Assembly (NCBI RefSeq): GCF_022045235.1
Contig: NW_027266308.1
Coordinates: forward strand, 41,912,001-41,976,000
Length of the DNA: 64,000 nt
Reading direction: 5' to 3'
Source: Haliotis cracherodii
Lineage: Eukaryota
Shown: piece by piece, positions 31,793 to 64,000 of the stretch
Position numbering within the stretch: position 1 is the stretch's first letter
Layout of the letters: every line of letters begins with the position of its first letter
Made by a program: the position numbers and the translations under genes
The notes under the pieces: model-generated
The model's database searches: none
What the model saw: only the letters and a program-made list of their open reading frames with translations
What the model was told of the DNA's origin: nothing

Positions 31793-32670
31793 AGACAGAC
31801 AGACAGACAGATAATTTATTAAAGTCTCACCTCGTTTGCTACAAATACTAAAATATTTACAAGGTATAAAAATATGAAGGTGTAGCACGAGCCACTCTAA
31901 GCAGAGTTATGAGAGACTAAAATTATTGGGTAAAAGCGTATGACATATAAATACATGAAAAAGGTCCTTAAAAACCGTAATAAAAATCATCGTAAAAATC
32001 ATTTGTATAGAGCCCGTGTTCGTTCTAATAAAATTCTGTTGCAGGGTTTGGCAGATGTAAAAATCATTACTGGGCTGGAAAGTATAAAACCTAGCTTCTG
32101 GTTATCACTAAAATCGTTAAAATCAGGACAGGTTGAATTGCACTTTGAAAGGAGGTGGCATCTGTAAGACTGGTACTGTGGGCAGTATAATAAAATATGT
32201 TTTTCATCCTCAATTGTATCTCTGCATACATAACAAGTTCTTTCTTCAATAGGGGTACTGTTGTAACGTCCAGTTTCTATGTGAAGCAGCGCAACTCCGC
32301 ACCGGAATCTTGAAAGGGCGCTTCTGTGTGACCGCTGAAGCTCACCCAACACATAGGATTCGACTCTATAATCGTCTTTAAAAGTGGCGTAGGTTCTCAG
32401 CCTATTTCCACCTGTTCCATGTACGCTATTCTTTTGATTGATCAGCTTCATCCAATTTTCTGTGAACTGTTCAAATATCTTTTCCTGACCGTCTTTGTGA
32501 CGTAACATTTGTCATACGTGAAATTAATGTTGTTAAAATGAGATAGTCCAAGTGCATCAAACTTCAGGTGTATTCTAAAAACTTGATTCCGTTTACGTCG
32601 CGCCGCCTGCCGATAGGTCCAATTGAGAACTTGATGTGCTAGACGTCCAGGATCCATGGTGCGTAATCTC
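31793..32670 (-). mobile_element. 5'-truncated non-LTR retrotransposon (3' end of ORF2, 3'UTR and tail); clade uncertain (RTEX/L2-like)
   Basis: RLRTY..FK...RSALSRFRCG...LHIETGRY...ERTCYVC...EDEKHILLYCPQY CCHC domain, frameshifted; minus-strand AATAAA then (TCTG)n tail. Confidence 0.85.
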
Positions 32671-33359
32671 ATGTAAAGGCGTTATACAGATCCCCACTGC
32701 CCCACGACGTCAAGCTGTCGAACGCCGTAAACCCATCCAAATACTCTCGGCGACCAACGTGGCTAAACTTTGCGGTATTTGTGACCAAGGCGCTGTACGC
32801 AGGACCACGAGCCACCACAAACGTATTCACGTCTACGATTAACGTTCGGCAAATTAGCCATTCCACATTAAGGGGTTGGGTCAGGGTGCAAAATATACTT
32901 ACTATCAGTAAATGTAAAATGTCAGTGCAAGAGAATAGTCTTAATTATCCACCGAATCAGATTCCATTTGGCGTAAAGGGTAAAATAGCTGAATGGACCA
33001 CTGAAAGTGAGTGATAACACCAGATGTTCAACATATTTCTAATGAACGTTAATTGGTGTTATTTACCGCAACGGAAAAACGTATAGTTCGTTGCAAGCTA
33101 AGATGATACAGCATGCGTATGTTGTGAATTGAATATTCCGGGCGAATTTCTTATTTTTTGTGACAGAAGTTTAGCCAGTCATGAAAGCTATCCATTCCCA
33201 TACGCACGTTTATAATCCAGGTTTCATGTGACTCAAGAGTCACCCATATACGCTGCAGACTCCTTGAGCATAATCTGGAGAAACATAGCTTCCTTTAACT
33301 AACATAGCAATGTTATTACTAAACAAGAAAACGAAAAGAATCGAGCTGTATTTTCAAGG

Positions 33360-33365
33360 TTTATT
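33360..33365 (-). terminator. polyadenylation signal of array gene copy 1 (repeated in every unit)
   Basis: minus-strand AATAAA ~170 nt after the stop, followed by U-rich ttcttttcgttttcttgt. Confidence 0.7.
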
Positions 33366-33537
33366 ATAGGATCGTACAACAGAAACTGTTTAAGAGGAAA
33401 ACAACAACACTGCCAGTGCGCTGACAGAAAGCAAAAGCACTTTGACATATAGCCACTTCAATATTTGGAATGTCTCTTCTGTAATGGAGCACTCATTAGA
33501 TGAACATATTCGTGTAACAGACAGACTTTTATCTGTT

Positions 33538-34104
33538 TCATTTTCTGAGAAAAGCAAGGATCTTCTGTGAAAAGGAGACTGGTTGTTTTGAAGAATCTCT
33601 TGTGATTGTCTTACGAGCTTTGTTCCGTCTTCGCAGAGAAAAACGCTTAGAGGTGAGATTTGTCAAAATGTTAACGTTGCTGTCTAACCGACGTCTCTTA
33701 GTTGGTGCTTCAGCTTCATATACATGGGCGACAGACGTCAAGAGAGTCCTTTCCACTTTAGAAATGACACGTTCTTTCCTTCGGAGCTCAGCCTCTTCTT
33801 CTTCTCTCAAGCTAAGCGATATTCGCGTCATGATGTTTCTTGAGAATGGTTGGTCTGAATGTCGCAGTCGTGGCGTTTTCTTGAACTGAAGAGAAGGAAG
33901 TGGACTGCCAAGTTGAGCCAAACTGGACTGAAGACTTCGAAGGGAGTTTTGGATTTCAACATCTGTATCACATTCCATGTCATCGTCGCTGAAGGAGTAT
34001 TCAACAAGTTTGATCCCCTGAGAGAAGTTGAAGCAAGGCTGGGCCTGGACGTCCAAGTTGAAGGGAGTGACACTGGTATACACAACTTCGGAAGCCCTCT
34101 TCAT
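33538..34104 (-). CDS. uncharacterised 188-aa protein, array copy 1 (R81)
   Basis: ATG in cacgATG context with an in-frame stop upstream; framed by TATA and AATAAA; intact in all copies. Confidence 0.75.
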   Translation of the reverse strand: MKRASEVVYTSVTPFNLDVQAQPCFNFSQGIKLVEYSFSDDDMECDTDVEIQNSLRSLQSSLAQLGSPLPSLQFKKTPRLRHSDQPFSRNIMTRISLSLREEEEAELRRKERVISKVERTLLTSVAHVYEAEAPTKRRRLDSNVNILTNLTSKRFSLRRRNKARKTITRDSSKQPVSFSQKILAFLRK

Positions 34105-34262
34105 CGTGAAAGGAGTTACCTGATGAGTCGATATGGAAATCTATTCACACGTTTGATTGTTAATCAAGTACAGCAGGATGGGTATGTAGTCTTAACCGTA
34201 TGTTCATTTAGTATCCAGACTATGGTGAGCAAGCAGCTGCTGTCAGCAAGTCCTTAGCATTC

Positions 34263-34299
34263 AAATGACGGCCTGACTACAGTCCTGGTCGCTTTTATA
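34263..34299 (-). promoter_or_regulatory. core promoter of array gene copy 1 (TATA box plus Inr; repeated in every unit)
   Basis: minus-strand TATAAAA (34299-34293) and TCATTT initiator-like motif with A+1 at 34266, ~160 nt upstream of the ATG. Confidence 0.65.
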
Positions 34300-35837
34300 C
34301 AGTAGCTTGCTTGTTGTGTATACAAGGTGATTAACAAAGACAACTGATTGACAGCATCCTAACATGTCTGTGTTCACAGCCATCCCAGACATTCGTCTCC
34401 GCTGAGCAAACATGCAATAGTGTCCAGTGATTGAAGGCTTTTGCTTGGAGATTAGTGAAGGGTTAATGATGTGGTCAGGGGTTAATTAGGTGAGCATTAC
34501 TTTTGGTCATGCCCGACCAAGTACAATATTTACTTGTGCCTTTTTGGTCAGTGCTGTTATCATGAATGGAGATTGAAAGATTAATTTCCAAACACATCCG
34601 AGGTAATTGTTTGTGTACTTGCCTTGACTGATTGACACCACCCTAACGTGCTAGCGTTTACAGCCATTCCAGACATTCGTCTGCATTGTCAAAACAATCA
34701 TCTATTGACCTTAACAGTGACTGTTTTAAAACTCGCAATCGCCAAGTTGAATCGAAATGCAAGAAGTCTGTTGCTATGATATCGTGTTCATCGTGAGAAA
34801 TGAACAAGTATTACCTTATGACACTGTCTGGTATCATACTGCGTATTTTACGGGAAATAACACATTTACTGTAGTACTTTTAACCTCGGAGTACACTTTT
34901 GACATAGCTTTGTTTGTGTACATCGGCTATTACACTTACGAAATTAATGTATGGAAAATGTGTCCGTTTCCTATTTCAAACATTACTCTTTTCCTTATCG
35001 TGGCTCTACTTTTAGCTAGGCACACCAAACCAGCCAAGATAACACTTAAGATGTGAGAAAGGGCACACATGTTATGGACCTTTACGTCTGTTATTGACGG
35101 TAGCGTTTGTGAACGTCTTGCCCTTACTACCTGAGGTTGTGTTGACTGGTGTATGTGACTTTTTAAGGTCAAGTTGTCTTTTAGTTAATCTTACATTCAT
35201 TGATGAGTTATCAGGTCAACGATAGTGAAATATTTGCTGCATATAGGTGAGTTTATATCCGGTCGTGGGGAAATATACCGTCTTCCTATGTAAGATCATT
35301 CAGTTACATATATTTGGAAAATAAGGGTTTTACTTCATATTGATCTTTGGATCGTATGCTTGTACTTGAATGACAGTTTCTTCAGAAGAACTGTATTACC
35401 TTCTTAATATGAATATATCTCCATGTTTTTGACGTAATTCCCATATTTCATGCTAAACGTCATGCGAGGAGAATTCTCAAGTCTGGAAGGTGTAAACTTG
35501 GTTCACTTTACTCTCAGCTTATTCAAAATAGAAAAGCGACAAATTCTTTGTTAGTAATGGGAGGTAAGTGATTACATCTGTACGCTTTACTGCTTTAACT
35601 GACATAGGAATGTTATTACTATACAAGAAAACGAAAAGAAGCGAGCTGTATTTTCAAGGTTTATTATAGGATCGTACAACAGAAACTGTTTAAGAGGAAA
35701 ACAACAACACTGCCAGTGCACTGACAGAAAGCAAAAGCACTTTGACATATAGCCACTTCAATATTTGGAATGTCTCTTCTGTAATGGAGCACTCATTAGA
35801 TGAACATATTCGTGTAACAGACAGACTTTTATCTGTT

Positions 35838-36404
35838 TCATTTTCTGAGAAAAGCAAGGATCTTCTGTGAAAAGGAGACTGGTTGTTTTGAAGAATCTCT
35901 TGTGATTGTCTTACGAGCTTTGTTCCGTCTTCGCAGAGAAAAACGCTTAGAGGTGAGATTTGTCAAAATGTTAACGTTGCTGTCTAACCGACGTCTCTTA
36001 GTTGGTGCTTCAGCTTCATATACATGGGCGACAGACGTCAAGAGAGTCCTTTCCACTTTAGAAATGACACGTTCTTTCCTTCGGAGCTCAGCCTCTTCTT
36101 CTTCTCTCAAGCTAAGCGATATTCGCGTCATGATGTTTCTTGAGAATGGTTGGTCTGAATGTCGCAGTCGTGGCGTTTTCTTGAACTGAAGAGAAGGAAG
36201 TGGACTGCCAAGTTGAGCCAAACTGGACTGAAGACTTCGAAGGGAGTTTTGGATTTCAACATCTGTATCACATTCCATGTCATCGTCGCTGAAGGAGTAT
36301 TCAACAAGTTTGATCCCCTGAGAGAAGTTGAAGCAAGGCTGGGCCTGGACGTCCAAGTTGAAGGGAGTGACACTGGTATACACAACTTCGGAAGCCCTCT
36401 TCAT
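35838..36404 (-). CDS. uncharacterised 188-aa protein, copy 2 (R81)
   Basis: protein identical to copy 1. Confidence 0.75.
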   Translation of the reverse strand: MKRASEVVYTSVTPFNLDVQAQPCFNFSQGIKLVEYSFSDDDMECDTDVEIQNSLRSLQSSLAQLGSPLPSLQFKKTPRLRHSDQPFSRNIMTRISLSLREEEEAELRRKERVISKVERTLLTSVAHVYEAEAPTKRRRLDSNVNILTNLTSKRFSLRRRNKARKTITRDSSKQPVSFSQKILAFLRK

Positions 36405-38069
36405 CGTGAAAGGAGTTACCTGATGAGTCGATATGGAAATCTATTCACACGTTTGATTGTTAATCAAGTACAGCAGGATGGGTATGTAGTCTTAACCGTA
36501 TGTTCATTTAGTATCCAGACTATGAAGAGCAAGCAGCTGCTGTCAGCAAGTCCTTAGCATTCAAATGACGGCCTGACTACAGTCCTGGTCGCTTTTATAC
36601 AGTAGCTTGCTTGTTGTGTATACAAGGTGATTAACAAAGACAACTGATTGACAGCATCCTAACATGTCTGTGTTCACAGCCATCCCAGACATTCGTCTCC
36701 GCTGAGCAAACATGCAATAGTGTCCAGTGATTGAAGGCTTTTGCTTGGAGATTAGTGAAGGGTTAATGATGTGGTCAGGGGTTAATTAGGTGAGCATTAC
36801 ATTTGGTCATGCCCGACCAAGTACAATATTTACTTGTGCCTTTTTGGTCAGTGCTGTTATCATGAATGGAGATTGAAAGATTAATTTCCAAACACATCCG
36901 AGGTAATTGTTTGTGTACTTGCCTTGACTGATTGACACCACCCTAACGTGCTAGCGTTTACAGCCATTCCAGACATTCGTCTGCATTGTCAAAACAATCA
37001 TCTATTGACCTTAACAGTGACTGTTTTAAAACTCGCAATCGCCAAGTTGAATCGAAATGCAAGAAGTCTGTTGCTATGATATCGTGTTCATCGTGAGAAA
37101 TGAACAAGTATTACCTTATGACACTGTCTGGTATCATACTGCGTATTTTACGGGAAATAACATATTTACTGTAGTACTTTTAACCTCGGAGTACACTTTT
37201 GACATAGCTTTGTTTGTGTACATCGGCTATTACACTTACGAAATTAATGTATGGAAAATGTGTCCGTTTCCTATTTCAAACATTACTCTTTTCCTTCTCG
37301 TGGCTCTACTTTTAGCTAGGCACACCAAACCAGCCAAGATAACACTTAAGATGTGAGAAAGGGCACACATGTTATGGACCTTTACGTCTGTTATTGACGG
37401 TAGCGTTTGTGAACGTCTTGCCCTTACTACCTGAGGTTGTGTTGACTGGTGTATGTCACTTTTTAAGGTCAAGTTGTCTTTTAGTTAATCTTACATTCAT
37501 TGATGAGTTATCAGGTCAACGATAGTGAAATAGTTGCTGCATATAGGTGAGTTTATATCCGGTCGTGGGGAAATATACCGTCTTCCTATGTAAGATCATT
37601 CAGTTACATATATTTGGAAAATAAGGGTTTTACTTCATATTGATCTTTGGATCGTATGCTTGTACTTGAATGACAGTTTCTTCAGAAGAACTGTATTACC
37701 TTCTTAATATGAATATATCTCCATGTTTTTGACGTAATTCCCATATTTCATGCTAAACGTCATGCGAGGAGAATTCTCAAGTCTGGAAGGTGTAAACTTG
37801 GTTCACTTTACTCTCAGCTTATTCAAAATAGAAAAGCGACAAATTCTTTGTTAGTAATGGGAGGTAAGTGATTACATCTGTACGCTTTACTGCTTTAACT
37901 GACATAGGAATGTTATTACTATACAAGAAAACGAAAAGAAGCGAGCTGTATTTTCAAGGTTTATTATAGGATCGTACAACAGAAACTGTTTAAGAGGAAA
38001 ACAACAACACTGCCAGTGCGCTGACAGAAAGCAAAAGCACTTTGACATATAGCCACTTCAATATTTGGA

Positions 38070-38233
38070 GAGCGGTCGGGTAGCCTAGTGGTTAAAGCGT
38101 TTGCTCGTCACGCCGAAGACCCGGGTTCGATTCCCGACATGGGTACAATGTGTGAAGCCCATTTCTGGTGTCCCCGCCGTGATATTGCTGGAATATTGCT
38201 AAAAGCGGCGTAAAACCATACTCACTCACTCAC
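38070..38233 (+). mobile_element. young tRNA-derived SINE in the 3'UTR of copy 3
   Basis: A-box tagcctagtggt, B-box ggttcgattccc, (CACT)n tail, perfect 12-bp TSD tcaatatttgga; all other units show the empty site. Confidence 0.95.
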
Positions 38234-38313
38234 TCAATATTTGGAATGTCTCTTCTGTAATGGAGCACTCATTAGATGAACATATTCGTGTAACAGACAG
38301 ACTTTTATCTGTT

Positions 38314-38880
38314 TCATTTTCTGAGAAAAGCAAGGATCTTCTGTGAAAAGGAGACTGGTTGTTTTGAAGAATCTCTTGTGATTGTCTTACGAGCTTTGTT
38401 CCGTCTTCGCAGAGAAAAACGCTTAGAGGTGAGATTTGTCAAAATGTTAACGTTGCTGTCTAACCGACGTCTCTTAGTTGGTGCTTCAGCTTCATATACA
38501 TGGGCGACAGACGTCAAGAGAGTCCTTTCCACTTTAGAAATGACACGTTCTTTCCTTCGGAGCTCAGCCTCTTCTTCTTCTCTCAAGCTAAGCGATATTC
38601 GCGTCATGATGTTTCTTGAGAATGGTTGGTCTGAATGTTGCAGTCGTGGCGTTTTCTTGAACTGAAGAGAAGGAAGTGGACTGCCAAGTTGAGCCAAACT
38701 GGACTGAAGACTTCGAAGGGAGTTTTGGATTTCAACATCTGTATCACATTCCATGTCATCGTCGCTGAAGGAGTATTCAACAAGTTTGATCCCCTGAGAG
38801 AAGTTGAAGCAAGGCTGGGCCTGGACGTCCAAGTTGAAGGGAGTGACACTGGTATACACAACTTCGGAAGCCCTCTTCAT
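38314..38880 (-). CDS. uncharacterised 188-aa protein, copy 3 (Q81)
   Basis: intact ORF. Confidence 0.72.
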   Translation of the reverse strand: MKRASEVVYTSVTPFNLDVQAQPCFNFSQGIKLVEYSFSDDDMECDTDVEIQNSLRSLQSSLAQLGSPLPSLQFKKTPRLQHSDQPFSRNIMTRISLSLREEEEAELRRKERVISKVERTLLTSVAHVYEAEAPTKRRRLDSNVNILTNLTSKRFSLRRRNKARKTITRDSSKQPVSFSQKILAFLRK

Positions 38881-40613
38881 CGTGAAAGGAGTTACCTGAT
38901 GAGTCGATATGGAAATCTATTCACACGTTTGATTGTTAATCAAGTACAGCAGGATGGGTATGTAGTCTTAACCGTATGTTCATTTAGTATCCAGACTATG
39001 GTGAGCAAGCAGCTGCTGTCAGCAAGTCCTTAGCATTCAAATGACGGCCTGACTACAGTCCTGGTCGCTTTTATACAGTAGCTTGCTTGTTGTGTATACA
39101 AGGTGATTAACAAAGACAACTGATTGACAGCATCCTAACATGTCTGTGTTCACAGCCATCCCAGACATTCGTCTCCGCTGAGCAAACATGCAATAGTGTC
39201 CAGTGATTGAAGGCTTTTGCTTGGAGATTAGTGAAGGGTTAATGATGTGGTCAGGGGTTAATTAGGTGAGCATTACTTTTGGTCATGCCCGACCAAGTAC
39301 AATATTTACTTGTGCCTTTTTGGTCAGTGCTGTTATCATGAATGGAGATTGAAAGATTAATTTCCAAACACATCCGAGGTAATTGTTTGTGTACTTGCCT
39401 TGACTGATTGACACCACCCTAACGTGCTAGCGTTTACAGCCATTCCAGACATTCGTCTGCATTGTCAAAACAATCATCTATTGACCTTAACAGTGACTGT
39501 TTTAAAACTCGCAATCGCCAAGTTGAATCGAAATGCAAGAAGTCTGTTGCTATGATATCGTGTTCATCGTGAGAAATGAACAAGTATTACCTTATGACAC
39601 TATCTGGTATCATACTCCGTATTTTACGGGAAATAACACATTTACTGTAGTACTTTTAACCTCGGAGTACACTTTTGACATAGCTTTGTTTGTGTACATC
39701 GGCTATTACACTTACGAAATTAATGTATGGAAAATGTGTCCGTTTCCTATTTCAAACATTACTCTTTTCCTTCTCGTGGCTCTACTTTTAGCTAGGCACA
39801 CCAAACCAGCCAAGATAACACTTAAGATGTGAGAAAGGGCACACATGTTATGGACCTTTACGTCTGTTATTGACGGTAGCGTTTGTGAACGTCTTGCCCT
39901 TACTACCTGAGGTTGTGTTGACTGGTGTATGTGACTTTTTAAGGTCAAGTTGTCTTTTAGTTAATCTTACATTCATTGATGAGTTATCAGGTCAACGATA
40001 GTGAAATATTTGCTGCATATAGGTGAGTTTATATCCGGTCGTGGGGAAATATACCGTCTTCCTATGTAAGATCATTCAGTTACATATATTTGGAAAATAA
40101 GGGTTTTACTTCATATTGATCTTTGGATCGTATGCTTGTACTTGAATGACAGTTTCTTCAGAAGAACTGTATTACCTTCTTAATATGAATATATCTCCAT
40201 GTTTTTGACGTAATTCCCATATTTCATGCTAAACGTCATGCGAGGAGAATTCTCAAGTCTGGAAGGTGTAAACTTGGTTCACTTTACTCTCAGCTTATTC
40301 AAAATAGAAAAGCGACAAATTCTTTGTTAGTAATGGGAGGTAAGTGATTACATCTGTACGCTTTACTGCTTTAACTGACATAGGAATGTTATTACTATAC
40401 AAGAAAACGAAAAGAAGCGAGCTGTATTTTCAAGGTTTATTATAGGATCGTACAACAGAAACTGTTTAAGAGGAAAACAACAACACTGCCAGTGCGCTGA
40501 CAGAAAGCAAAAGCACTTTGACATATAGCCACTTCAATATTTGGAATGTCTCTTCTGTAATGGAGCACTCATTAGATGAACATATTCGTGTAACAGACAG
40601 ACTTTTATCTGTT

Positions 40614-41180
40614 TCATTTTCTGAGAAAAGCAAGGATCTTCTGTGAAAAGGAGACTGGTTGTTTTGAAGAATCTCTTGTGATTGTCTTACGAGCTTTGTT
40701 CCGTCTTCGCAGAGAAAAACGCTTAGAGGTGAGATTTGTCAAAATGTTAACGTTGCTGTCTAACCGACGTCTCTTAGTTGGTGCTTCAGCTTCATATACA
40801 TGGGCGACAGACGTCAAGAGAGTCCTTTCCACTTTAGAAATGACACGTTCTTTCCTTCGGAGCTCAGCCTCTTCTTCTTCTCTCAAGCTAAGCGATATTC
40901 GCGTCATGATGTTTCTTGAGAATGGTTGGTCTGAATGTTGCAGTCGTGGCGTTTTCTTGAACTGAAGAGAAGGAAGTGGACTGCCAAGTTGAGCCAAACT
41001 GGACTGAAGACTTCGAAGGGAGTTTTGGATTTCAACATCTGTATCACATTCCATGTCATCGTCGCTGAAGGAGTATTCAACAAGTTTGATCCCCTGAGAG
41101 AAGTTGAAGCAAGGCTGGGCCTGGACGTCCAAGTTGAAGGGAGTGACACTGGTATACACAACTTCGGAAGCCCTCTTCAT
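40614..41180 (-). CDS. uncharacterised 188-aa protein, copy 4 (Q81)
   Basis: intact ORF. Confidence 0.75.
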   Translation of the reverse strand: MKRASEVVYTSVTPFNLDVQAQPCFNFSQGIKLVEYSFSDDDMECDTDVEIQNSLRSLQSSLAQLGSPLPSLQFKKTPRLQHSDQPFSRNIMTRISLSLREEEEAELRRKERVISKVERTLLTSVAHVYEAEAPTKRRRLDSNVNILTNLTSKRFSLRRRNKARKTITRDSSKQPVSFSQKILAFLRK

Positions 41181-42913: not shown

Positions 42914-43480
42914 TCATTTTCTGAGAAAAGCAAGGATCTTCTGTGAAAAGGAGACTGGTTGTTTTGAAGAATCTCTTGTGATTGTCTTACGAGCTTTGTT
43001 CCGTCTTCGCAGAGAAAAACGCTTAGAGGTGAGATTTGTCAAAATGTTAACGTTGCTGTCTAACCGACGTCTCTTAGTTGGTGCTTCAGCTTCATATACA
43101 TGGGCGACAGACGTCAAGAGAGTCCTTTCCACTTTAGAAATGACACGTTCTTTCCTTCGGAGCTCAGCCTCTTCTTCTTCTCTCAAGCTAAGCGATATTC
43201 GCGTCATGATGTTTCTTGAGAATGGTTGGTCTGAATGTTGCAGTCGTGGCGTTTTCTTGAACTGAAGAGAAGGAAGTGGACTGCCAAGTTGAGCCAAACT
43301 GGACTGAAGACTTCGAAGGGAATTTTGGATTTCAACATCTGTATCACATTCCATGTCATCGTCGCTGAAGGAGTATTCAACAAGTTTGATCCCCTGAGAG
43401 AAGTTGAAGCAAGGCTGGGCCTGGACGTCCAAGTTGAAGGGAGTGACACTGGTATACACAACTTCGGAAGCCCTCTTCAT
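42914..43480 (-). CDS. uncharacterised 188-aa protein, copy 5 (Q81)
   Basis: intact ORF. Confidence 0.75.
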   Translation of the reverse strand: MKRASEVVYTSVTPFNLDVQAQPCFNFSQGIKLVEYSFSDDDMECDTDVEIQNSLRSLQSSLAQLGSPLPSLQFKKTPRLQHSDQPFSRNIMTRISLSLREEEEAELRRKERVISKVERTLLTSVAHVYEAEAPTKRRRLDSNVNILTNLTSKRFSLRRRNKARKTITRDSSKQPVSFSQKILAFLRK

Positions 43481-45213: not shown

Positions 45214-45780
45214 TCATTTTCTGAGAAAAGCAAGGATCTTCTGTGAAAAGGAGACTGGTTGTTTTGAAGAATCTCTTGTGATTGTCTTACGAGCTTTGTT
45301 CCGTCTTCGCAGAGAAAAACGCTTAGAGGTGAGATTTGTCAAAATGTTAACGTTGCTGTCTAACCGACGTCTCTTAGTTGGTGCTTCAGCTTCATATACA
45401 TGGGCGACAGACGTCAAGAGAGTCCTTTCCACTTTAGAAATGACACGTTCTTTCCTTCGGAGCTCAGCCTCTTCTTCTTCTCTCAAGCTAAGCGATATTC
45501 GCGTCATGATGTTTCTTGAGAATGGTTGGTCTGAATGTTGCAGTCGTGGCGTTTTCTTGAACTGAAGAGAAGGAAGTGGACTGCCAAGTTGAGCCAAACT
45601 GGACTGAAGACTTCGAAGGGAGTTTTGGATTTCAACATCTGTATCACATTCCATGTCATCGTCGCTGAAGGAGTATTCAACAAGTTTGATCCCCTGAGAG
45701 AAGTTGAAGCAAGGCTGGGCCTGGACGTCCAAGTTGAAGGGAGTGACACTGGTATACACAACTTCGGAAGCCCTCTTCAT
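45214..45780 (-). CDS. uncharacterised 188-aa protein, copy 6 (Q81)
   Basis: intact ORF. Confidence 0.75.
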   Translation of the reverse strand: MKRASEVVYTSVTPFNLDVQAQPCFNFSQGIKLVEYSFSDDDMECDTDVEIQNSLRSLQSSLAQLGSPLPSLQFKKTPRLQHSDQPFSRNIMTRISLSLREEEEAELRRKERVISKVERTLLTSVAHVYEAEAPTKRRRLDSNVNILTNLTSKRFSLRRRNKARKTITRDSSKQPVSFSQKILAFLRK

Positions 45781-47513: not shown

Positions 47514-48080
47514 TCATTTTCTGAGAAAAGCAAGGATCTTCTGTGAAAAGGAGACTGGTTGTTTTGAAGAATCTCTTGTGATTGTCTTACGAGCTTTGTT
47601 CCGTCTTCGCAGAGAAAAACGCTTAGAGGTGAGATTTGTCAAAATGTTAACGTTGCTGTCTAACCGACGTCTCTTAGTTGGTGCTTCAGCTTCATATACA
47701 TGGGCGACAGACGTCAAGAGAGTCCTTTCCACTTTAGAAATGACACGTTCTTTCCTTCGGAGCTCAGCCTCTTCTTCTTCTCTCAAGCTAAGCGATATTC
47801 GCGTCATGATGTTTCTTGAGAATGGTTGGTCTGAATGTTGCAGTCGTGGCGTTTTCTTGAACTGAAGAGAAGGAAGTGGACTGCCAAGTTGAGCCAAACT
47901 GGACTGAAGACTTCGAAGGGAGTTTTGGATTTCAACATCTGTATCACATTCCATGTCATCGTCGCTGAAGGAGTATTCAACAAGTTTGATCCCCTGAGAG
48001 AAGTTGAAGCAAGGCTGGGCCTGGACGTCCAAGTTGAAGGGAGTGACACTGGTATACACAACTTCGGAAGCCCTCTTCAT
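47514..48080 (-). CDS. uncharacterised 188-aa protein, copy 7 (Q81; promoter interrupted)
   Basis: intact ORF; insertion between TATA and Inr. Confidence 0.7.
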   Translation of the reverse strand: MKRASEVVYTSVTPFNLDVQAQPCFNFSQGIKLVEYSFSDDDMECDTDVEIQNSLRSLQSSLAQLGSPLPSLQFKKTPRLQHSDQPFSRNIMTRISLSLREEEEAELRRKERVISKVERTLLTSVAHVYEAEAPTKRRRLDSNVNILTNLTSKRFSLRRRNKARKTITRDSSKQPVSFSQKILAFLRK

Positions 48081-48254
48081 CGTGAAAGGAGTTACCTGAT
48101 GAGTCGATATGGAAATCTATTCACACGTTTGATTGTTAATCAAGTACAGCAGGATGGGTATGTAGTCTTAACCGTATGTTCATTTAGTATCCAGACTATG
48201 GTGAGCAAGCAGCTGCTGTCAGCAAGTCCTTAGCATTCAAATGACGGCCTGACT

Positions 48255-48319
48255 TCCTTACTTACTTATATTGGAGATTTAACGTGCGCTTTCCGACTGC
48301 AAGCGTATGTCGCACACGG
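48255..48319 (-). mobile_element. 65-bp 5'-truncated retroposon insertion
   Basis: 9-bp TSD ggcctgact (48246-48254, 48320-48328); minus strand ends gttaaatctccaata(taag)n. Confidence 0.85.
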
Positions 48320-49887: not shown

Positions 49888-50454
49888 TCATTTTCTGAGA
49901 AAAGCAAGGATCTTCTGTGAAAAGGAGACTGGTTGTTTTGAAGAATCTCTTGTGATTGTCTTACGAGCTTTGTTCCGTCTTCGCAGAGAAAAACGCTTAG
50001 AGGTGAGATTTGTCAAAATGTTAACGTTGCTGTCTAACCGACGTCTCTTAGTTGGTGCTTCAGCTTCATATACATGGGCGACAGACGTCAAGAGAGTCCT
50101 TTCCACTTTAGAAATGACACGTTCTTTCCTTCGGAGCTCAGCCTCTTCTTCTTCTCTCAAGCTAAGCGATATTCGCGTCATGATGTTTCTTGAGAATGGT
50201 TGGTCTGAATGTTGCAGTCGTGGCGTTTTCTTGAACTGAAGAGAAGGAAGTGGACTGCCAAGTTGAGCCAAACTGGACTGAAGACTTCGAAGGGAGTTTT
50301 GGATTTCAACATCTGTATCACATTCCATGTCATCGTCGCTGAAGGAGTATTCAACAAGTTTGATCCCCTGAGAGAAGTTGAAGCAAGGCTGGGCCTGGAC
50401 GTCCAAGTTGAAGGGAGTGACACTGGTATACACAACTTCGGAAGCCCTCTTCAT
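49888..50454 (-). CDS. uncharacterised 188-aa protein, copy 8 (Q81)
   Basis: intact ORF. Confidence 0.75.
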   Translation of the reverse strand: MKRASEVVYTSVTPFNLDVQAQPCFNFSQGIKLVEYSFSDDDMECDTDVEIQNSLRSLQSSLAQLGSPLPSLQFKKTPRLQHSDQPFSRNIMTRISLSLREEEEAELRRKERVISKVERTLLTSVAHVYEAEAPTKRRRLDSNVNILTNLTSKRFSLRRRNKARKTITRDSSKQPVSFSQKILAFLRK

Positions 50455-52188: not shown

Positions 52189-52755
52189 TCATTTTCTGAG
52201 AAAAGCAAGGATCTTCTGTGAAAAGGAGACTGGTTGTTTTGAAGAATCTCTTGTGATTGTCTTACGAGCTTTGTTCCGTCTTCGCAGAGAAAAACGCTTA
52301 GAGGTGAGATTTGTCAAAATGTTAACGTTGCTGTCTAACCGACGTCTCTTAGTTGGTGCTTCAGCTTCATATACATGGGCGACAGACGTCAAGAGAGTCC
52401 TTTCCACTTTAGAAATGACACGTTCTTTCCTTCGGAGCTCAGCCTCTTCTTCCTCTCTCAAGCTAAGCGATATTCGCGCCATGATGTTTCTTGAGAATGG
52501 TTGGTCTGAATGTCGCAGTCGTGGCGTTTTCTTGAACTGAAGAGAGGGAAGTGGACTGCCAAGTTGAGCCAAACTGGACTGAAGACTTCGAAGGGAGTTT
52601 TGGATTTCAACATCTGTATCACATTCCATGTCATCGTCGCTGAAGGAGTATTCAACAAGTTTGATCCCCTGAGAGAAGTTGAAGCAAGGCTGGGCCTGGA
52701 CGTCCAAGTTGAAGGGAGTGACACTGGTATACACAACTTCGGAAGCCCTCTTCAT
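52189..52755 (-). CDS. uncharacterised 188-aa protein, copy 9 (R81, T93A)
   Basis: intact ORF; most divergent internal copy. Confidence 0.75.
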   Translation of the reverse strand: MKRASEVVYTSVTPFNLDVQAQPCFNFSQGIKLVEYSFSDDDMECDTDVEIQNSLRSLQSSLAQLGSPLPSLQFKKTPRLRHSDQPFSRNIMARISLSLREEEEAELRRKERVISKVERTLLTSVAHVYEAEAPTKRRRLDSNVNILTNLTSKRFSLRRRNKARKTITRDSSKQPVSFSQKILAFLRK

Positions 52756-54488: not shown

Positions 54489-55055
54489 TCATTTTCTGAG
54501 AAAAGCAAGGATCTTCTGTGAAAAGGAGACTGGTTGTTTTGAAGAATCTCTTGTGATTGTCTTACGAGCTTTGTTCCGTCTTCGCAGAGAAAAACGCTTA
54601 GAGGTGAGATTTGTCAAAATGTTAACGTTGCTGTCTAACCGACGTCTCTTAGTTGGTGCTTCAGCTTCATATACATGGGCGACAGACGTCAAGAGAGTCC
54701 TTTCCACTTTAGAAATGACACGTTCTTTCCTTCGGAGCTCAGCCTCTTCTTCTTCTCTCAAGCTAAGCGATATTCGCGTCATGATGTTTCTTGAGAATGG
54801 TTGGTCTGAATGTCGCAGTCGTGGCGTTTTCTTGAACTGAAGAGAAGGAAGTGGACTGCCAAGTTGAGCCAAACTGGACTGAAGACTTCGAAGGGAGTTT
54901 TGGATTTCAACATCTGTATCACATTCCATGTCATCGTCGCTGAAGGAGTATTCAACAAGTTTGATCCCCTGAGAGAAGTTGAAGCAAGGCTGGGCCTGGA
55001 CGTCCAAGTTGAAGGGAGTGACACTGGTATACACAACTTCGGAAGCCCTCTTCAT
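54489..55055 (-). CDS. uncharacterised 188-aa protein, copy 10 (R81)
   Basis: intact ORF. Confidence 0.75.
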   Translation of the reverse strand: MKRASEVVYTSVTPFNLDVQAQPCFNFSQGIKLVEYSFSDDDMECDTDVEIQNSLRSLQSSLAQLGSPLPSLQFKKTPRLRHSDQPFSRNIMTRISLSLREEEEAELRRKERVISKVERTLLTSVAHVYEAEAPTKRRRLDSNVNILTNLTSKRFSLRRRNKARKTITRDSSKQPVSFSQKILAFLRK

Positions 55056-56788: not shown

Positions 56789-57355
56789 TCATTTTCTGAG
56801 AAAAGCAAGGATCTTCTGTGAAAAGGAGACTGGTTGTTTTGAAGAATCTCTTGTGATTGTCTTACGAGCTTTGTTCCGTCTTCGCAGAGAAAAACGCTTA
56901 AAGGTGAGATTTGTCAAAATGTTAACGTTGCTGTCTAACCGACGTCTCTTAGTTGGTGCTTCAGCTTCATATACATGGGCGACAGACGTCAAGAGAGTCC
57001 TTTCCACTTTAGAAATGACACGTTCTTTCCTTCGGAGCTCAGCCTCTTCTTCTTCTCTCAAGCTAAGCGATATTCGCGTCATGATGTTTCTTGAGAATGG
57101 TTGGTCTGAATGTTGCAGTCGTGGCGTTTTCTTGAACTGAAGAGAAGGAAGTGGACTGCCAAGTTGAGCCAAACTGGACTGAAGACTTCGAAGGGAGTTT
57201 TGGATTTCAACATCTGTATCACATTCCATGTCATCGTCGCTGAAGGAGTATTCAACAAGTTTGATCCCCTGAGAGAAGTTGAAGCAAGGCTGGGCCTGGA
57301 CGTCCAAGTTGAAGGGAGTGACACTGGTATACACAACTTCGGAAGCCCTCTTCAT
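56789..57355 (-). CDS. uncharacterised 188-aa protein, copy 11 (Q81, S152F)
   Basis: intact ORF. Confidence 0.75.
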   Translation of the reverse strand: MKRASEVVYTSVTPFNLDVQAQPCFNFSQGIKLVEYSFSDDDMECDTDVEIQNSLRSLQSSLAQLGSPLPSLQFKKTPRLQHSDQPFSRNIMTRISLSLREEEEAELRRKERVISKVERTLLTSVAHVYEAEAPTKRRRLDSNVNILTNLTFKRFSLRRRNKARKTITRDSSKQPVSFSQKILAFLRK

Positions 57356-59088
57356 CGTGAAAGGAGTTACCTGATGAGTCGATATGGAAATCTATTCACA
57401 CGTTTGATTGTTAATCAAGTACAGCAGGATGGGTATGTAGTCTTAACCGTATGTTCATTTAGTATCCAGACTATGGTGAGCAAGCAGCTGCTGTCAGCAA
57501 GTCCTTAGCATTCAAATGACGGCCTGACTACAGTCCTGGTCGCTTTTATACAGTAGCTTGCTTGTTGTGTATACAAGGTGATTAACAAAGACAACTGATT
57601 GACAGCATCCTAACATGTCTGTGTTCACAGCCATCCCAGACATTCGTCTCCGCTGAGCAAACATGCAATAGTGTCCAGTGATTGAAGGCTTTTGCTTGGA
57701 GATTAGTGAAGGGTTAATGATGTGGTCAGGGGTTAATTAGGTGAGCATTACTTTTGGTCATGCCCGACCAAGTACAATATTTACTTGTGCCTTTTTGGTC
57801 AGTGCTGTTATCATGAATGGAGATTGAAAGATTAATTTCCAAACACATCCGAGGTAATTGTTTGTGTACTTGCCTTGACTGATTGACACCACCCTAACGT
57901 GCTAGCGTTTACAGCCATTCCAGACATTCGTCTGCATTGTCAAAACAATCATCTATTGACCTTAACAGTGACTGTTTTAAAACTCGCAATCGCCAAGTTG
58001 AATCGAAATGCAAGAAGTCTGTTGCTATGATATCGTGTTCATCGTGAGAAATGAACAAGTATTACCTTATGACACTATCTGGTATCATACTCCGTATTTT
58101 ACGGGAAATAACACATTTACTGTAGTACTTTTAACCTCGGAGTACACTTTTGACATAGCTTTGTTTGTGTACATCGGCTATTACACTTACGAAATTAATG
58201 TATGGAAAATGTGTCCGTTTCCTATTTCAAACATTACTCTTTTCCTTCTCGTGGCTCTACTTTTAGCTAGGCACACCAAACCAGCCAAGATAACACTTAA
58301 GATGTGAGAAAGGGCACACATGTTATGGACCTTTACGTCTGTTATTGACGGTAGCGTTTGTGAACGTCTTGCCCTTACTACCTGAGGTTGTGTTGACTGG
58401 TGTATGTGACTTTTTAAGGTCAAGTTGTCTTTTAGTTAATCTTACATTCATTGATGAGTTATCAGGTCAACGATAGTGAAATATTTGCTGCATATAGGTG
58501 AGTTTATATCCGGTCGTGGGGAAATATACCGTCTTCCTATGTAAGATCATTCAGTTACATGTATTTGGAAAATAAGGGTTTTACTTCATATTGATCTTTG
58601 GATCGTATGCTTGTACTTGAATGACAGTTTCTTCAGAAGAACTGTATTACCTTCTTAATATGAATATATCTCCATGTTTTTGACGTAATTCCCATATTTC
58701 ATGCTAAACGTCATGCGAGGAGAATTCTCAAGTCTGGAAGGTGTAAACTTGGTTCACTTTACTCTCAGCTTATTCAAAATAGAAAAGCGACAAATTCTTT
58801 GTTAGTAATGGGAGGTAAGTGATTACATCTGTACGCTTTACTGCTTTAACTGACATAGGAATGTTATTACTATACAAGAAAACGAAAAGAAGCGAGCTGT
58901 ATTTTCAAGGTTTATTATAGGATCGTACAACAGAAACTGTTTAAGAGGAAAACAACAACACTGCCAGTGCGCTGACAGAAAGCAAAAGCACTTTGACATA
59001 TAGCCACTTCAATATTTGGAATGTCTCTTCTGTAATGGAGCACTCATTAGATGAACATATTCGTGTAACAGACAGACTTTTATCTGTT

Positions 59089-59655
59089 TCATTTTCTGAG
59101 AAAAGCAAGGATCTTCTGTGAAAAGGAGACTGGTTGTTTTGAAGAATCTCTTGTGATTGTCTTACGAGCTTTGTTCCGTCTTCGCAGAGAAAAACGCTTA
59201 GAGGTGAGATTTGTCAAAATGTTAACGTTGCTGTCTAACCGACGTCTCTTAGTTGGTGCTTCAGCTTCATATACATGGGCGACAGACGTCAAGAGAGTCC
59301 TTTCCACTTTAGAAATGACACGTTCTTTCCTTCGGAGCTCAGCCTCTTCTTCTTCTCTCAAGCTAAGCGATATTCGCGTCATGATGTTTCTTGAGAATGG
59401 TTGGTCTGAATGTCGCAGTCGTGGCGTTTTCTTGAACTGAAGAGAAGGAAGTGGACTGCCAAGTTGAGCCAAACTGGACTGAAGACTTCGAAGGGAGTTT
59501 TGGATTTCAACATCTGTATCACATTCCATGTCATCGTCGCTGAAGGAGTATTCAACAAGTTTGATCCCCTGAGAGAAGTTGAAGCAAGGCTGGGCCTGGA
59601 CGTCCAAGTTGAAGGGAGTGACACTGGTATACACAACTTCGGAAGCCCTCTTCAT
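59089..59655 (-). CDS. uncharacterised 188-aa protein, copy 12 (R81)
   Basis: intact ORF. Confidence 0.75.
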   Translation of the reverse strand: MKRASEVVYTSVTPFNLDVQAQPCFNFSQGIKLVEYSFSDDDMECDTDVEIQNSLRSLQSSLAQLGSPLPSLQFKKTPRLRHSDQPFSRNIMTRISLSLREEEEAELRRKERVISKVERTLLTSVAHVYEAEAPTKRRRLDSNVNILTNLTSKRFSLRRRNKARKTITRDSSKQPVSFSQKILAFLRK

Positions 59656-61388
59656 CGTGAAAGGAGTTACCTGATGAGTCGATATGGAAATCTATTCACA
59701 CGTTTGATTGTTAATCAAGTACAGCAGGATGGGTATGTAGTCTTAACCGTATGTTCATTTAGTATCCAGACTATGGTGAGCAAGCAGCTGCTGTCAGCAA
59801 GTCCTTAGCATTCAAATGACGGCCTGACTACAGTCCTGGTCGCTTTTATACAGTAGCTTGCTTGTTGTGTATACAAGGTGATTAACAAAGACAACTGATT
59901 GACAGCATCCTAACATGTCTGTGTTCACAGCCATCCCAGACATTCATCTCCGCTGAGCAAACATGCAATAGTGTCCAGTGATTGAAGGCTTTTGCTTGGA
60001 GATTAGTGAAGGGTTAATGATGTGGTCAGGGGTTAATTAGGTGAGCATTACTTTTGGTCATGCCCGACCAAGTACAATATTTACTTGTGCCTTTTTGGTC
60101 AGTGCTGTTATCATGAATGGAGATTGAAAGATTAATTTCCAAACACATCCGAGGTAATTGTTTGTGTACTTGCCTTGACTGATTGACACCACCCTAACGT
60201 GCTAGCGTTTACAGCCATTCCAGACATTCGTCTGCATTGTCAAAACAATCATCTATTGACCTTAACAGTGACTGTTTTAAAACTAGCAATCGCCAAGTTG
60301 AATCGAAATGCAAGAAGTCTGTTGCTATGATATCGTGTTCATCGTGAGAAATGAACAAGTATTACCTTATGACACTATCTGGTATCATACTCCGTATTTT
60401 ACGGGAAATAACACATTTACTGTAGTACTTTTAAGCTCGGAGTACACTTTTGACATAGCTTTGTTTGTGTACATCGGCTATTACACTTACGAAATTAATG
60501 TATGGAAAATGTGTCCGTTTCCTATTTCAAACATTACTCTTTTCCTTCTCGTGGCTCTACTTTTAGCTAGGCACACCAAACCAGCCAAGATAACACTTAA
60601 GATGTGAGAAAGGGCACACATGTTATGGACCTTTACGTCTGTTATTGACGGTAGCGTTTGTGAACGTCTTGCCCTTACTACCTGAGGTTGTGTTGACTGG
60701 TGTATGTCACTTTTTAAGGTCAAGTTGTCTTTTAGTTAATCTTACATTCATTGATGAGTTATCAGGTCAACGATAGTGAAATATTTGCTGCATATAGGTG
60801 AGTTTATATCCGGTCGTGGGGAAATATACCGTCTTCCTATGTAAGATCATTCAGTTACATATATTTGGAAAATAAGGGTTTTACTTCATATTGATCTTTG
60901 GATCGTATGCTTGTACTTGAATGACAGTTTCTTCAGAAGAACTGTATTACCTTCTTAATATGAATATATCTCCATGTTTTTGACGTAATTCCCATATTTC
61001 ATGCTAAACGTCATGCGAGGAGAATTCTCAAGTCTGGAAGGTGTAAACTTGGTTCACTTTACTCTCAGCTTATTCAAAATAGAAAAGCGACAAATTCTTT
61101 GTTAGTAATGGGAGGTAAGTGATTACATCTGTACGCTTTACTGCTTTAACTGACATAGGAATGTTATTACTATACAAGAAAACGAAAAGAAGCGAGCTGT
61201 ATTTTCAAGGTTTATTATAGGATCGTACAACAGAAACTGTTTAAGAGGAAAACAACAACACTGCCAGTGCGCTGACAGAAAGCAAAAGCACTTTGACATA
61301 TAGCCACTTCAATATTTGGAATGTCTCTTCTGTAATGGAGCACTCATTAGATGAACATATTCGTGTAACAGACAGACTTTTATCTGTT

Positions 61389-61955
61389 TCATTTTCTGAG
61401 AAAAGCAAGGATCTTCTGTGAAAAGGAGACTGGTTGTTTTGAAGAATCTCTTGTGATTGTCTTACGAGCTTTGTTCCGTCTTCGCAGAGAAAAACGCTTA
61501 AAGGTGAGATTTGTCAAAATGTTAACGTTGCTGTCTAACCGACGTCTCTTAGTTGGTGCTTCAGCTTCATATACATGGGCGACAGACGTCAAGAGAGTCC
61601 TTTCCACTTTAGAAATGACACGTTCTTTCCTTCGGAGCTCAGCCTCTTCTTCTTCTCTCAAGCTAAGCGATATTCGCGTCATGATGTTTCTTGAGAATGG
61701 TTGGTCTGAATGTTGCAGTCGTGGCGTTTTCTTGAACTGAAGAGAAGGAAGTGGACTGCCAAGTTGAGCCAAACTGGACTGAAGACTTCGAAGGGAGTTT
61801 TGGATTTCAACATCTGTATCACATTCCATGTCATCGTCGCTGAAGGAGTATTCAACAAGTTTGATCCCCTGAGAGAAGTTGAAGCAAGGCTGGGCCTGGA
61901 CGTCCAAGTTGAAGGGAGTGACACTGGTATACACAACTTCGGAAGCCCTCTTCAT
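61389..61955 (-). CDS. uncharacterised 188-aa protein, copy 13 (Q81, S152F)
   Basis: intact ORF. Confidence 0.75.
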   Translation of the reverse strand: MKRASEVVYTSVTPFNLDVQAQPCFNFSQGIKLVEYSFSDDDMECDTDVEIQNSLRSLQSSLAQLGSPLPSLQFKKTPRLQHSDQPFSRNIMTRISLSLREEEEAELRRKERVISKVERTLLTSVAHVYEAEAPTKRRRLDSNVNILTNLTFKRFSLRRRNKARKTITRDSSKQPVSFSQKILAFLRK

Positions 61956-63688
61956 CGTGAAAGGAGTTACCTGATGAGTCGATATGGAAATCTATTCACA
62001 CGTTTGATTGTTAATCAAGTACAGCAGGATGGGTATGTAGTCTTAACCGTATGTTCATTTAGTATCCAGACTATGGTGAGCAAGCAGCTGCTGTCAGCAA
62101 GTCCTTAGCATTCAAATGACGGCCTGACTACAGTCCTGGTCGCTTTTATACAGTAGCTTGCTTGTTGTGTATACAAGGTGATTAACAAAGACAACTGATT
62201 GACAGCATCCTAACATGTCTGTGTTCACAGCCATCCCAGACATTCGTCTCCGCTGAGCAAACATGCAATAGTGTCCAGTGATTGAAGGCTTTTGCTTGGA
62301 GATTAGTGAAGGGTTAATGATGTGGTCAGGGGTTAATTAGGTGAGCATTACTTTTGGTCATGCCCGACCAAGTACAATATTTACTTGTGCCTTTTTGGTC
62401 AGTGCTGTTATCATGAATGGAGATTGAAAGATTAATTTCCAAACACATCCGAGGTAATTGTTTGTGTACTTGCCTTGACTGATTGACACCACCCTAACGT
62501 GCTAGCGTTTACAGCCATTCCAGACATTCGTCTGCATTGTCAAAACAATCATCTATTGACCTTAACAGTGACTGTTTTAAAACTCGCAATCGCCAAGTTG
62601 AATCGAAATGCAAGAAGTCTGTTGCTATGATATCGTGTTCATCGTGAGAAATGAACAAGTATTACCTTATGACACTATCTGGTATCATACTCCGTATTTT
62701 ACGGGAAATAACACATTTACTGTAGTACTTTTAACCTCGGAGTACACTTTTGACATAGCTTTGTTTGTGTACATCGGCTATTACACTTACGAAATTAATG
62801 TATGGAAAATGTGTCCGTTTCCTATTTCAAACATTACTCTTTTCCTTCTCGTGGCTCTACTTTTAGCTAGGCACACCAAACCAGCCAAGATAACACTTAA
62901 GATGTGAGAAAGGGCACACATGTTATGGACCTTTACGTCTGTTATTGACGGTAGCGTTTGTGAACGTCTTGCCCTTACTACCTGAGGTTGTGTTGACTGG
63001 TGTATGTGACTTTTTAAGGTCAAGTTGTCTTTTAGTTAATCTTACATTCATTGATGAGTTATCAGGTCAACGATAGTGAAATATTTGCTGCATATAGGTG
63101 AGTTTATATCCGGTCGTGGGGAAATATACCGTCTTCCTATGTAAGATCATTCAGTTACATGTATTTGGAAAATAAGGGTTTTACTTCATATTGATCTTTG
63201 GATCGTATGCTTGTACTTGAATGACAGTTTCTTCAGAAGAACTGTATTACCTTCTTAATATGAATATATCTCCATGTTTTTGACGTAATTCCCATATTTC
63301 ATGCTAAACGTCATGCGAGGAGAATTCTCAAGTCTGGAAGGTGTAAACTTGGTTCACTTTACTCTCAGCTTATTCAAAATAGAAAAGCGACAAATTCTTT
63401 GTTAGTAATGGGAGGTAAGTGATTACATCTGTACGCTTTACTGCTTTAACTGACATAGGAATGTTATTACTATACAAGAAAACGAAAAGAAGCGAGCTGT
63501 ATTTTCAAGGTTTATTATAGGATCGTACAACAGAAACTGTTTAAGAGGAAAACAACAACACTGCCAGTGCGCTGACAGAAAGCAAAAGCACTTTGACATA
63601 TAGCCACTTCAATATTTGGAATGTCTCTTCTGTAATGGAGCACTCATTAGATGAACATATTCGTGTAACAGACAGACTTTTATCTGTT

Positions 63689-64000
63689 TCATTTTCTGAG
63701 AAAAGCAAGGATCTTCTGTGAAAAGGAGACTGGTTGTTTTGAAGAATCTCTTGTGATTGTCTTACGAGCTTTGTTCCGTCTTCGCAGAGAAAAACGCTTA
63801 GAGGTGAGATTTGTCAAAATGTTAACGTTGCTGTCTAACCGACGTCTCTTAGTTGGTGCTTCAGCTTCATATACATGGGCGACAGACGTCAAGAGAGTCC
63901 TTTCCACTTTAGAAATGACACGTTCTTTCCTTCGGAGCTCAGCCTCTTCTTCTTCTCTCAAGCTAAGCGATATTCGCGTCATGATGTTTCTTGAGAATGG
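63689..64000 (-). CDS. uncharacterised 188-aa protein, copy 14 (C-terminal part; cut by window edge)
   Basis: identical C-terminal half. Confidence 0.7.
   Translation of the reverse strand, partial: PFSRNIMTRISLSLREEEEAELRRKERVISKVERTLLTSVAHVYEAEAPTKRRRLDSNVNILTNLTSKRFSLRRRNKARKTITRDSSKQPVSFSQKILAFLRK

Follow-up and report, generated by a model that had tools for sequence, protein, structure and literature searches.

Head-to-tail copies of a short intronless orphan gene in the abalone Haliotis cracherodii, and separate arrays of its paralogues

Why should a genome hold a short and complete gene in many nearly identical copies, one behind the other? The question is raised by a stretch of 64,000 nucleotides from the abalone Haliotis cracherodii (NCBI RefSeq assembly GCF_022045235.1, contig NW_027266308.1, positions 41,912,001 to 41,976,000 of the forward strand; C45:41912001-41976000 in our numbering), which was analysed over its whole length and is called the window here. 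From position 33293 onwards the window consists of copies of a 2.3-kb unit, each with an open reading frame (ORF) on the minus strand, and we refer to these copies and their continuation beyond the window as array A. In the following we ask whether the array is real, whether its unit is a gene, to which family that gene belongs and what may have driven its amplification.

Array A and the anatomy of its unit

Thirteen complete ORFs of 567 nt lie on the minus strand of the window, all encoding 188 aa and free of stop codons and frameshifts, in units whose period is 2300 bp in ten cases and 2476, 2374 and 2301 bp in the others. With the next 30 kb of the scaffold added, the array extends from 33293 to the window-equivalent position 83300 (C45:41995300), a span of ~50 kb that comprises 21 full units with 99.2-99.8% identity and one last unit truncated at unit position 1451. 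The ORF of the edge unit is shifted out of frame by an 8-nt insertion at nt 188, and 21 intact ORFs of 187-188 aa each were counted over the array. Array A thus has the marks of a macrosatellite, i.e. many highly identical copies, head to tail, of a unit that measures 1 kb or more; its GC content is 40% and no antisense or inverted copies were seen. A preliminary description of the window had claimed at least 14 head-to-tail copies of the gene, 13 uninterrupted ORFs and three length changes (+176, +74 and +1), all outside the ORF. The longer span and the extraction of ORFs bear these claims out, and the two larger length changes could be identified as retroposon insertions. The features of the array within the window are as follows.

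33293..64000, minus strand: part of array A in the window (13 full units and the start of a 14th)
33293..35592, minus strand: unit 1, 2300 bp, the reference unit
33538..34104, minus strand: ORF copy 1, 188 aa
35838..36404, minus strand: ORF copy 2
38314..38880, minus strand: ORF copy 3, R81Q variant
40614..41180, minus strand: ORF copy 4
42914..43480, minus strand: ORF copy 5
45214..45780, minus strand: ORF copy 6
47514..48080, minus strand: ORF copy 7
49888..50454, minus strand: ORF copy 8
52189..52755, minus strand: ORF copy 9, in a unit of 2301 bp
54489..55055, minus strand: ORF copy 10
56789..57355, minus strand: ORF copy 11
59089..59655, minus strand: ORF copy 12
61389..61955, minus strand: ORF copy 13
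63444..64000, minus strand: start of unit 14, whose ORF (from 63689 on) extends past the end of the window and is intact in the full genome sequence
38070..38230, no strand given: tRNA-derived short interspersed element (SINE) with target-site duplication in the 3' untranslated region (3'UTR) of copy 3 (the +176 change)
48255..48319, no strand given: 65-nt retroposon tail with a 9-nt target-site duplication at copy 7 (the +74 change)

The insertion at copy 7 lies exactly between the TATA box and the initiator and probably disables the promoter of this copy. Both insertions are young; the tail of the SINE at copy 3 is (ACTC)n, the 65-nt tail at copy 7 ends in a repeat of the (TAAG)n type, and the sequence of the latter recurs upstream of a family paralogue at L012:7299-7841.

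Besides the complete ORF, each unit possesses promoter-like and polyadenylation signals of its own, listed here for the reference unit.

33360..33365, minus strand: AATAAA polyadenylation signal, 172 nt past the stop codon and next to a U-rich stretch
34263..34268, minus strand: initiator-like TCATTT, with the A at 34266 as predicted transcription start
34293..34299, minus strand: TATAAAA box
34345..34354, minus strand: exact Pbx-Meis/Prep (TALE) decamer TGATTGACAG, ~45 nt upstream of the TATA box
34629..34638, minus strand: second copy of the decamer, with one mismatch, in the upstream copy of a 56-nt repeat

TATAAAA, TCATTT and AATAAA are found in every unit of array A. The initiator A lies 33 nt past the first T of the TATA box (34299-34293), the main ATG has an A at -3 and the ORF is intronless, so that the signals read from the sequence in the preliminary description, the U-rich element among them, are all in place. 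Each unit is therefore, to judge from its sequence, a compact and autonomous-looking RNA polymerase II gene. A direct duplication of 56 nt (34343-34398 and 34627-34682, 84% alike) is the sole internal repeat of the unit and places the mismatched decamer 284 nt further upstream than the exact one. An antisense ORF of 132 aa (33859-34257, plus strand) overlaps the 5' part of the gene and is repeated in every unit; it has no family match, and we take it to be spurious and probably no more than a side effect of the sense frame.

Genome assembly is known to be prone to errors at long identical repeats, and array A could in principle be an over-expanded or mis-joined collapsed repeat, with nothing specific pointing that way. 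However, 39 columns of single-nucleotide polymorphisms (SNPs) across the 21 full units, together with the unique insertions, give each unit an identity. Moreover, the array is present in independent data: contigs of three other public runs (X1, X10 and X14), which come from three studies, carry two organism labels and are ~2% diverged from the window, join 35592 to 33293 and so go back by 2300. This circular junction of 2300 bp was assembled at high word depth in each of the three runs, and a loose end of X10 at 34743 reads into the same right-flank sequence as the right edge of array A, reproducing the junction of array and flank. We therefore regard the chance of an assembly artefact as negligible. 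Being present in diverged runs, array A is older than a species split, as are its period and its right junction. The runs share 0.44-0.47 of the words of the unit, and a reading of these shares as coverage by transcripts only was rejected, as the contigs cover the whole unit and the shares reflect the divergence of ~2%.

An orphan protein family under long-term constraint

The first search with the protein returned two close relatives, which are 87% and 45% identical. Among 1.84 billion representatives, a profile search then gave 16 proteins and a later search one more, i.e. ~17 relatives, the only named ones being two entries of the gastropod Gigantopelta aegis called ‘uncharacterized protein’, LOC121371396 (XP_041353197.1) and LOC121378347 (XP_041362409.1). 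These are only 23-31% identical to the abalone protein and nevertheless true homologues, with the LVDYSF and acidic run, the charged helix, motifs of the FRRFSPRR type and the C-terminal hydrophobic motif. So far, and on the evidence of sequence searches, the family appears only in abalone-like and neomphaline gastropods.

The alignments reveal a shared architecture. In the N-terminal part we find MKRxSE..YT, PxFNF and LVDYSF[ST]D followed by an acidic/serine run; in the middle, a helix LQSxLxxL, a long charged helix R.L..R.SL.LK.EE..E..RK and a variable linker; and in the C-terminal part, ERPxKKRKLD (ERPxKKRRxD in the array A protein), which resembles a nuclear localisation signal (NLS), then FRRFSPRR[VL]T, a basic stretch and a hydrophobic LFGFLK/LCF. 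The composition is 18% K+R, 12% D+E and 19% Ser/Thr, with a pI of 9-10 (~10 for the array A protein). AlphaFold models made from 9 and from 19 sequences agree, at a predicted template modelling score (pTM) of 0.20-0.23, on a long helix at ~87-123 (per-residue confidence, pLDDT, >90), a helix at 47-64 and a short C-terminal helix, the rest being disordered; the models perhaps also contain a small N-terminal hairpin. KKRKLD-type motifs are similar to classical nuclear localisation signals, and in RRFSPRR we find combined consensus sites of the protein kinase A type (RRxS) and of the cyclin-dependent kinase type (SPxR). Because of these motifs, the protein could be a nuclear adaptor or regulator controlled by phosphorylation.

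That the gene could not be assigned to a known family had been stated from the start, and the database searches agree. No Pfam family reaches the threshold in any of 19 members (the best match of the window protein, at E = 0.067, falls short of it), and none matches more than one of them. A profile search of PDB gave 0 hits at E up to 10, and the protein Atlas had no usable match for the array A or the array B protein (array B being one of three further arrays described below). Rfam and tRNA scans of the unit found nothing, a search of metagenome contigs with the relative P0007 yielded no confirmed locus, and no description of the protein family or of the arrays was found in the literature. 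Two familiar kinds of amplified gene were considered and dropped: a macrosatellite gene of the DUX or homeobox type acting in zygotic genome activation, and a histone or sperm nuclear basic protein. The 19 members have no Pfam match to a homeobox, histone or protamine.

Given how young the copies are, it had been cautioned that intact ORFs alone would be weak evidence of selection, and this caution proved justified. Only 7 of the 39 SNP columns fall in the ORF (4 synonymous, 3 nonsynonymous), one copy has an in-frame 3-nt deletion there, and selection within the array cannot be shown because these changes are too few. The comparison of paralogues is more informative. For paralogue pairs the proportion of nonsynonymous differences (pN) is 0.4-0.5 and that of synonymous differences (pS) is saturated at 0.7-0.9, with an omega (nonsynonymous to synonymous rate ratio) of 0.17-0.49 where it could be computed. 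Since diverged paralogues and orthologues keep the conserved motifs and pN stays below a saturated pS, we conclude that the ORF is a real gene rather than a chance frame and that, as judged from these alignments, the family is under long-term constraint at the protein level. With ~17 relatives, conserved motifs and constrained paralogues, the proposal of a lineage-restricted protein-coding gene holds.

Within the species the copies evolve together. At ORF nt 28, 61 and 129 the 21 copies all agree, whereas X1, X10 and X14 differ from them; therefore the copies have been homogenised within species, and the decaying copy at the edge fits such concerted evolution. Most likely, array A arose and stays uniform by unequal crossing-over and gene conversion. 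In a tree of the family, each paralogue lineage of the genome groups with orthologues from other species.

The anatomy of the gene is shared as well. A TATA-like box ~30 nt before a CATT-type initiator was seen in most of 12 paralogues examined and an AATAAA 20-210 nt past the stop codon in all 12, despite promoter sequences that are unrelated among them. The heat-shock element nGAAnnTTCnnGAAn was not found within 450 nt upstream of any of the 12, so that an inducible intronless gene of the heat-shock type was discarded, and scans of the promoters for cAMP response element (CRE), E2F and NF-kB motifs gave nothing consistent.

The unit could also be derived from a mobile element or a virus and have multiplied as a tandem concatemer. 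In favour of this, the orphan ORF belongs to no cellular family, and the tail of ORF2 of a long interspersed element (LINE) is found 0.8 kb from the left edge of array A (31999-32508). Yet this LINE piece falls outside the unit, in which no terminal repeats were found, and Pfam detected no transposase, reverse-transcriptase, integrase or capsid domain in the window protein or the 19 members. The 1.3-kb spacer occurs nowhere in the genome outside array A, the members of the family are single genes, fixed and syntenic-looking, whose RNA polymerase II signals are ordinary, and the family has orthologues in other gastropods. The absence of terminal inverted repeat, long terminal repeat (LTR), transposase and reverse-transcriptase motifs noted earlier is in line with these results. 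Lacking terminal repeats, such domains and dispersed copies, the unit does not qualify as a transposable element or integrated virus, and we consider such an origin very improbable.

Further arrays in the genome and possible reasons for amplification

A profile search of the genome, combined with ORF extraction, located three more arrays of family genes.

C45:19608366-19776492, plus strand: array B, ~58 units of 2.87 kb with a 221-aa ORF, at least 46 of them intact
C78:4403891-4444838: array C, on another scaffold, 15 units of ~2.89 kb with a 177-aa member in each
C45:55243792-55304444: array D, 19 units of 3.35 kb with a head-to-head gene pair in each

The array B protein is 35% identical to the window protein. 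The left part of array B is more heterogeneous, its units measuring 2.55-2.87 kb, and at least three of its copies, those at 19626386, 19629251 and 19657945, are broken. The member in array C has an orthologue, P0014, that is 94% identical. The pair in array D consists of distant family genes of 171 aa (minus strand) and 154 aa (plus strand) that lie ~1.1 kb apart, and one more pair of this type is found ~10 kb beyond the array, at 55314265. Dispersed members were found on C45 at 40.39-40.42, 42.19, 55.31 and 55.39 Mb, so that three arrays and most dispersed members share one scaffold of 70.6 Mb. Over the four arrays the intact family ORFs amount to ~120. The units of arrays A-D have no DNA similarity to each other, and we conclude from this that old paralogues were amplified independently. 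From other species the clues are indirect: four variants of one B-lineage protein occur on contigs of equal size (10.6 kb), which are possibly one and the same contig, and several relatives sit on contigs about one unit long.

Four old paralogue lineages, each amplified separately and together holding ~120 intact ORFs, make the amplification look non-accidental and make selection for high gene dosage the most likely reason for the arrays. A high dosage would allow much product to be made in one brief burst, for which gametogenesis or cleavage-stage embryos would be the obvious candidate stages. With modest confidence we thus favour the reading of array A as a lineage-specific, dosage-amplified and concertedly evolving gene array. 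The array itself, the anatomy of its gene, the family with its long-term constraint, the concerted evolution and the independent amplification are shown by the sequence data. Of the lineage-specific, dosage-amplified gene proposed in the preliminary description, the real and lineage-restricted gene stands, with four separate amplifications added; the dosage rationale, like the transcription of the family genes, their stage of expression and the nuclear location of the protein, is something that we infer.

A number of observations weigh against amplification for dosage. The runs X1, X10 and X14 cover the spacer as evenly as the ORF; they look DNA-like for this reason and hold no transcript evidence. 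Three further runs guessed to be RNA contain almost none of the words of the unit. In array A, two further ATGs precede the main one in the predicted 5'UTR, downstream of the initiator, and no homologue from an annotated abalone gene set was present in the protein collections searched. Recent constraint appears weak, both in the counts of 4 synonymous and 3 nonsynonymous changes within the array and between close species, where ~3-4 nonsynonymous changes in the ORF stand against 1-3 synonymous ones and the ORF diverges at ~0.4-0.7x the rate of the spacer. Among the copies of array B, pN is close to pS. Finally, the ratio of observed to expected CpG is 0.73 in the array A unit versus 0.40 in the neighbouring mannosidase region; against the background of methylation in molluscs, such a contrast suggests that expression of the gene is not broad, and the value of 0.73 therefore argues against broad, germ-line-methylated (housekeeping) expression. 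A 419-nt contig of run X7 lies wholly inside the ORF, and at a depth of only 4 it is ambiguous as a transcript.

Some of these points would suit a neutral, satellite-like amplification, in which the arrays are largely silent by-products of unequal crossing-over, copy number has no function and only the dispersed single-copy paralogues do the work of the family. The recent copies are under little purifying selection and the runs examined give no evidence of expression; individual copies have accepted a SINE in the 3'UTR or an insertion that parts the TATA box from the initiator, array B has its broken copies, and tandem repeats of every size abound in the genome. However, four independent amplifications in one small family would hardly be expected by chance, and ~95% of the ORFs are intact. 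In the diverged copies of array B the ORF is ~2x as conserved as its flanks, the period and junction of array A have been kept in another species, and the B-lineage genes of yet another organism are possibly several per contig. On balance, we think it unlikely that the arrays are neutral.

Alternatively, the arrays might reflect intragenomic conflict, with selfish and suppressor genes co-amplified in antagonism and encoding a fast-evolving nuclear protein of meiosis or gametogenesis. The several paralogous arrays, three of which are found with most dispersed members on the same 70.6-Mb scaffold, the restriction of the family to one lineage and its fast evolution (87% identity to the nearest orthologue, nonsynonymous changes equal to or exceeding synonymous ones between close species) would agree with this. 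There is, however, no evidence for sex linkage or distorted transmission of scaffold C45, in array A no copies were seen in antisense or inverted orientation, from which small RNAs would arise, and one of the four arrays is found on a different scaffold. Drive amplicons are typically young, whereas these paralogue lineages are old and have been conserved between species, and we judge a conflict of this kind to be quite unlikely.

A more specific form of the dosage reading starts from the decamer near the TATA box. The exact decamer is also present upstream of the array C ORF and copies with one mismatch in two single-copy paralogues, at a chance level of 0.17 matches (mean, up to 1 mismatch) in a shuffled array A unit. 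As the motif was chosen after it had been seen, we treat it as a lead and not as a result. It is conceivable, if rather doubtful, that this gastropod family, amplified at least four times, would consist of disordered nuclear proteins under the control of phosphorylation and form a hitherto unknown burst-expression system of the spiralian oocyte-to-embryo transition, possibly switched on by TALE (Pbx/Meis-type) factors. If so, maternal TALE factors could act through the decamer beside the TATA box, and the system, made of an entirely new protein, would be functionally analogous to the arrays of DUX4, Zscan4 or the early histones.

Genomic surroundings and other coding arrays

Upstream of array A lies a multi-exon GH38 alpha-mannosidase gene on the plus strand (~-8557 to 19002, e.g. 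exon 4850-4990), which carries the motif HHDAITGTS. The possibility that the array is nested in an intron of this gene was rejected; the exons end at ~19000 (+) and none was found beyond the array, for which reason array A is most likely intergenic and, going by the predicted strands, convergent with the mannosidase gene. The introns of the latter contain minisatellites of 54 bp x 27 (3400-4836), 60 bp x 30 (11125-12943) and 96 bp x 7 (13578-14274). Two more, of 23 bp x 81 and strongly G-skewed (22106-23979) and of 43 bp x 32 (30161-31530), lie between the mannosidase exons and the array, together with a run of 162 N at 27841-28002 that is a gap or a masked stretch. The LINE piece mentioned above is an ORF of 169 aa (31999-32508, minus strand) that looks like the C-terminal zinc-knuckle tail of the ORF2 of a non-LTR retrotransposon. 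Elsewhere on the scaffold, a GH38 alpha-mannosidase is encoded in full by an uninterrupted frame of 1092 aa (L034, C45:12390333-12392720, plus strand); this is apparently a paralogue, without introns, of the multi-exon gene beside array A and may be a retrogene. At C7:25190671-25249832 (minus strand) we observed two sets of Egg_lysin-family exons, likely those of sperm lysin and its paralogue sp18.

Coding macrosatellites are already known as a phenomenon; they are few in number, and most work on them has concerned mammals. New here are the orphan family, which is unannotated, and its four independent arrays, in one of which a gene pair has been amplified. The nearest comparison is human D4Z4/DUX4 (4q35/10q26), which like array A has a kilobase-scale unit (3.3 versus 2.3 kb), head-to-tail order, tens of homogenised copies and an intronless ORF per unit, and for whose product a role in an early-embryo burst has been proposed. 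D4Z4 is GC-rich and heterochromatic, with its polyadenylation signal beyond the last unit. Array A, in contrast, has its own TATA box and AATAAA in every unit at a GC content of 40%, and its protein has no recognisable domain, whereas DUX4 is a double-homeobox transcription factor of a clear family. In RS447 (USP17/DUB3), CT47, TSPY and GAGE each tandem unit is, as in array A, a complete and potentially expressed gene, and RS447 and other human coding macrosatellites likewise have variable, homogenised copies. The human genes, however, belong to known families with documented transcription, whereas array A represents an uncharacterised family whose transcripts are predicted; and unlike them, the abalone family has had four separate paralogue lineages amplified. 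The expression of four human macrosatellites has been described (PMC3018141).

The early histone repeats of sea urchins resemble array A in that short, TATA-driven, intronless genes are arranged in homogenised tandem units, which number hundreds in the urchin. In their case the accepted explanation is that early cleavage requires product in a rapid burst. A histone unit, though, has five genes, no poly(A) signals and extremely conserved proteins, whereas the array A protein is fast-evolving, lineage-restricted and not a histone, and only array D among arrays A-D has more than one gene per unit. Stellate/Su(Ste) of Drosophila and Slx/Sly of the mouse are, as here, paralogous arrays of a small and fast-evolving gene concentrated on one chromosome. 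In comparison with such recent amplicons, the abalone paralogue lineages are old, their synonymous sites being saturated.

DUX4, Zscan4 and the early histones mark moments in embryos or germ cells at which a sudden burst of product is needed. We believe that the abalone arrays offer a natural system for studying why some genes are amplified repeatedly, how coding arrays evolve in concert and what drives early development or gametogenesis in spiralians. Furthermore, ~120 near-identical intact genes are apparently missing from abalone gene sets, and repeat masking probably hides them from annotation. Differences in copy number between abalone species could bear on speciation and on the conservation genomics of this endangered group.

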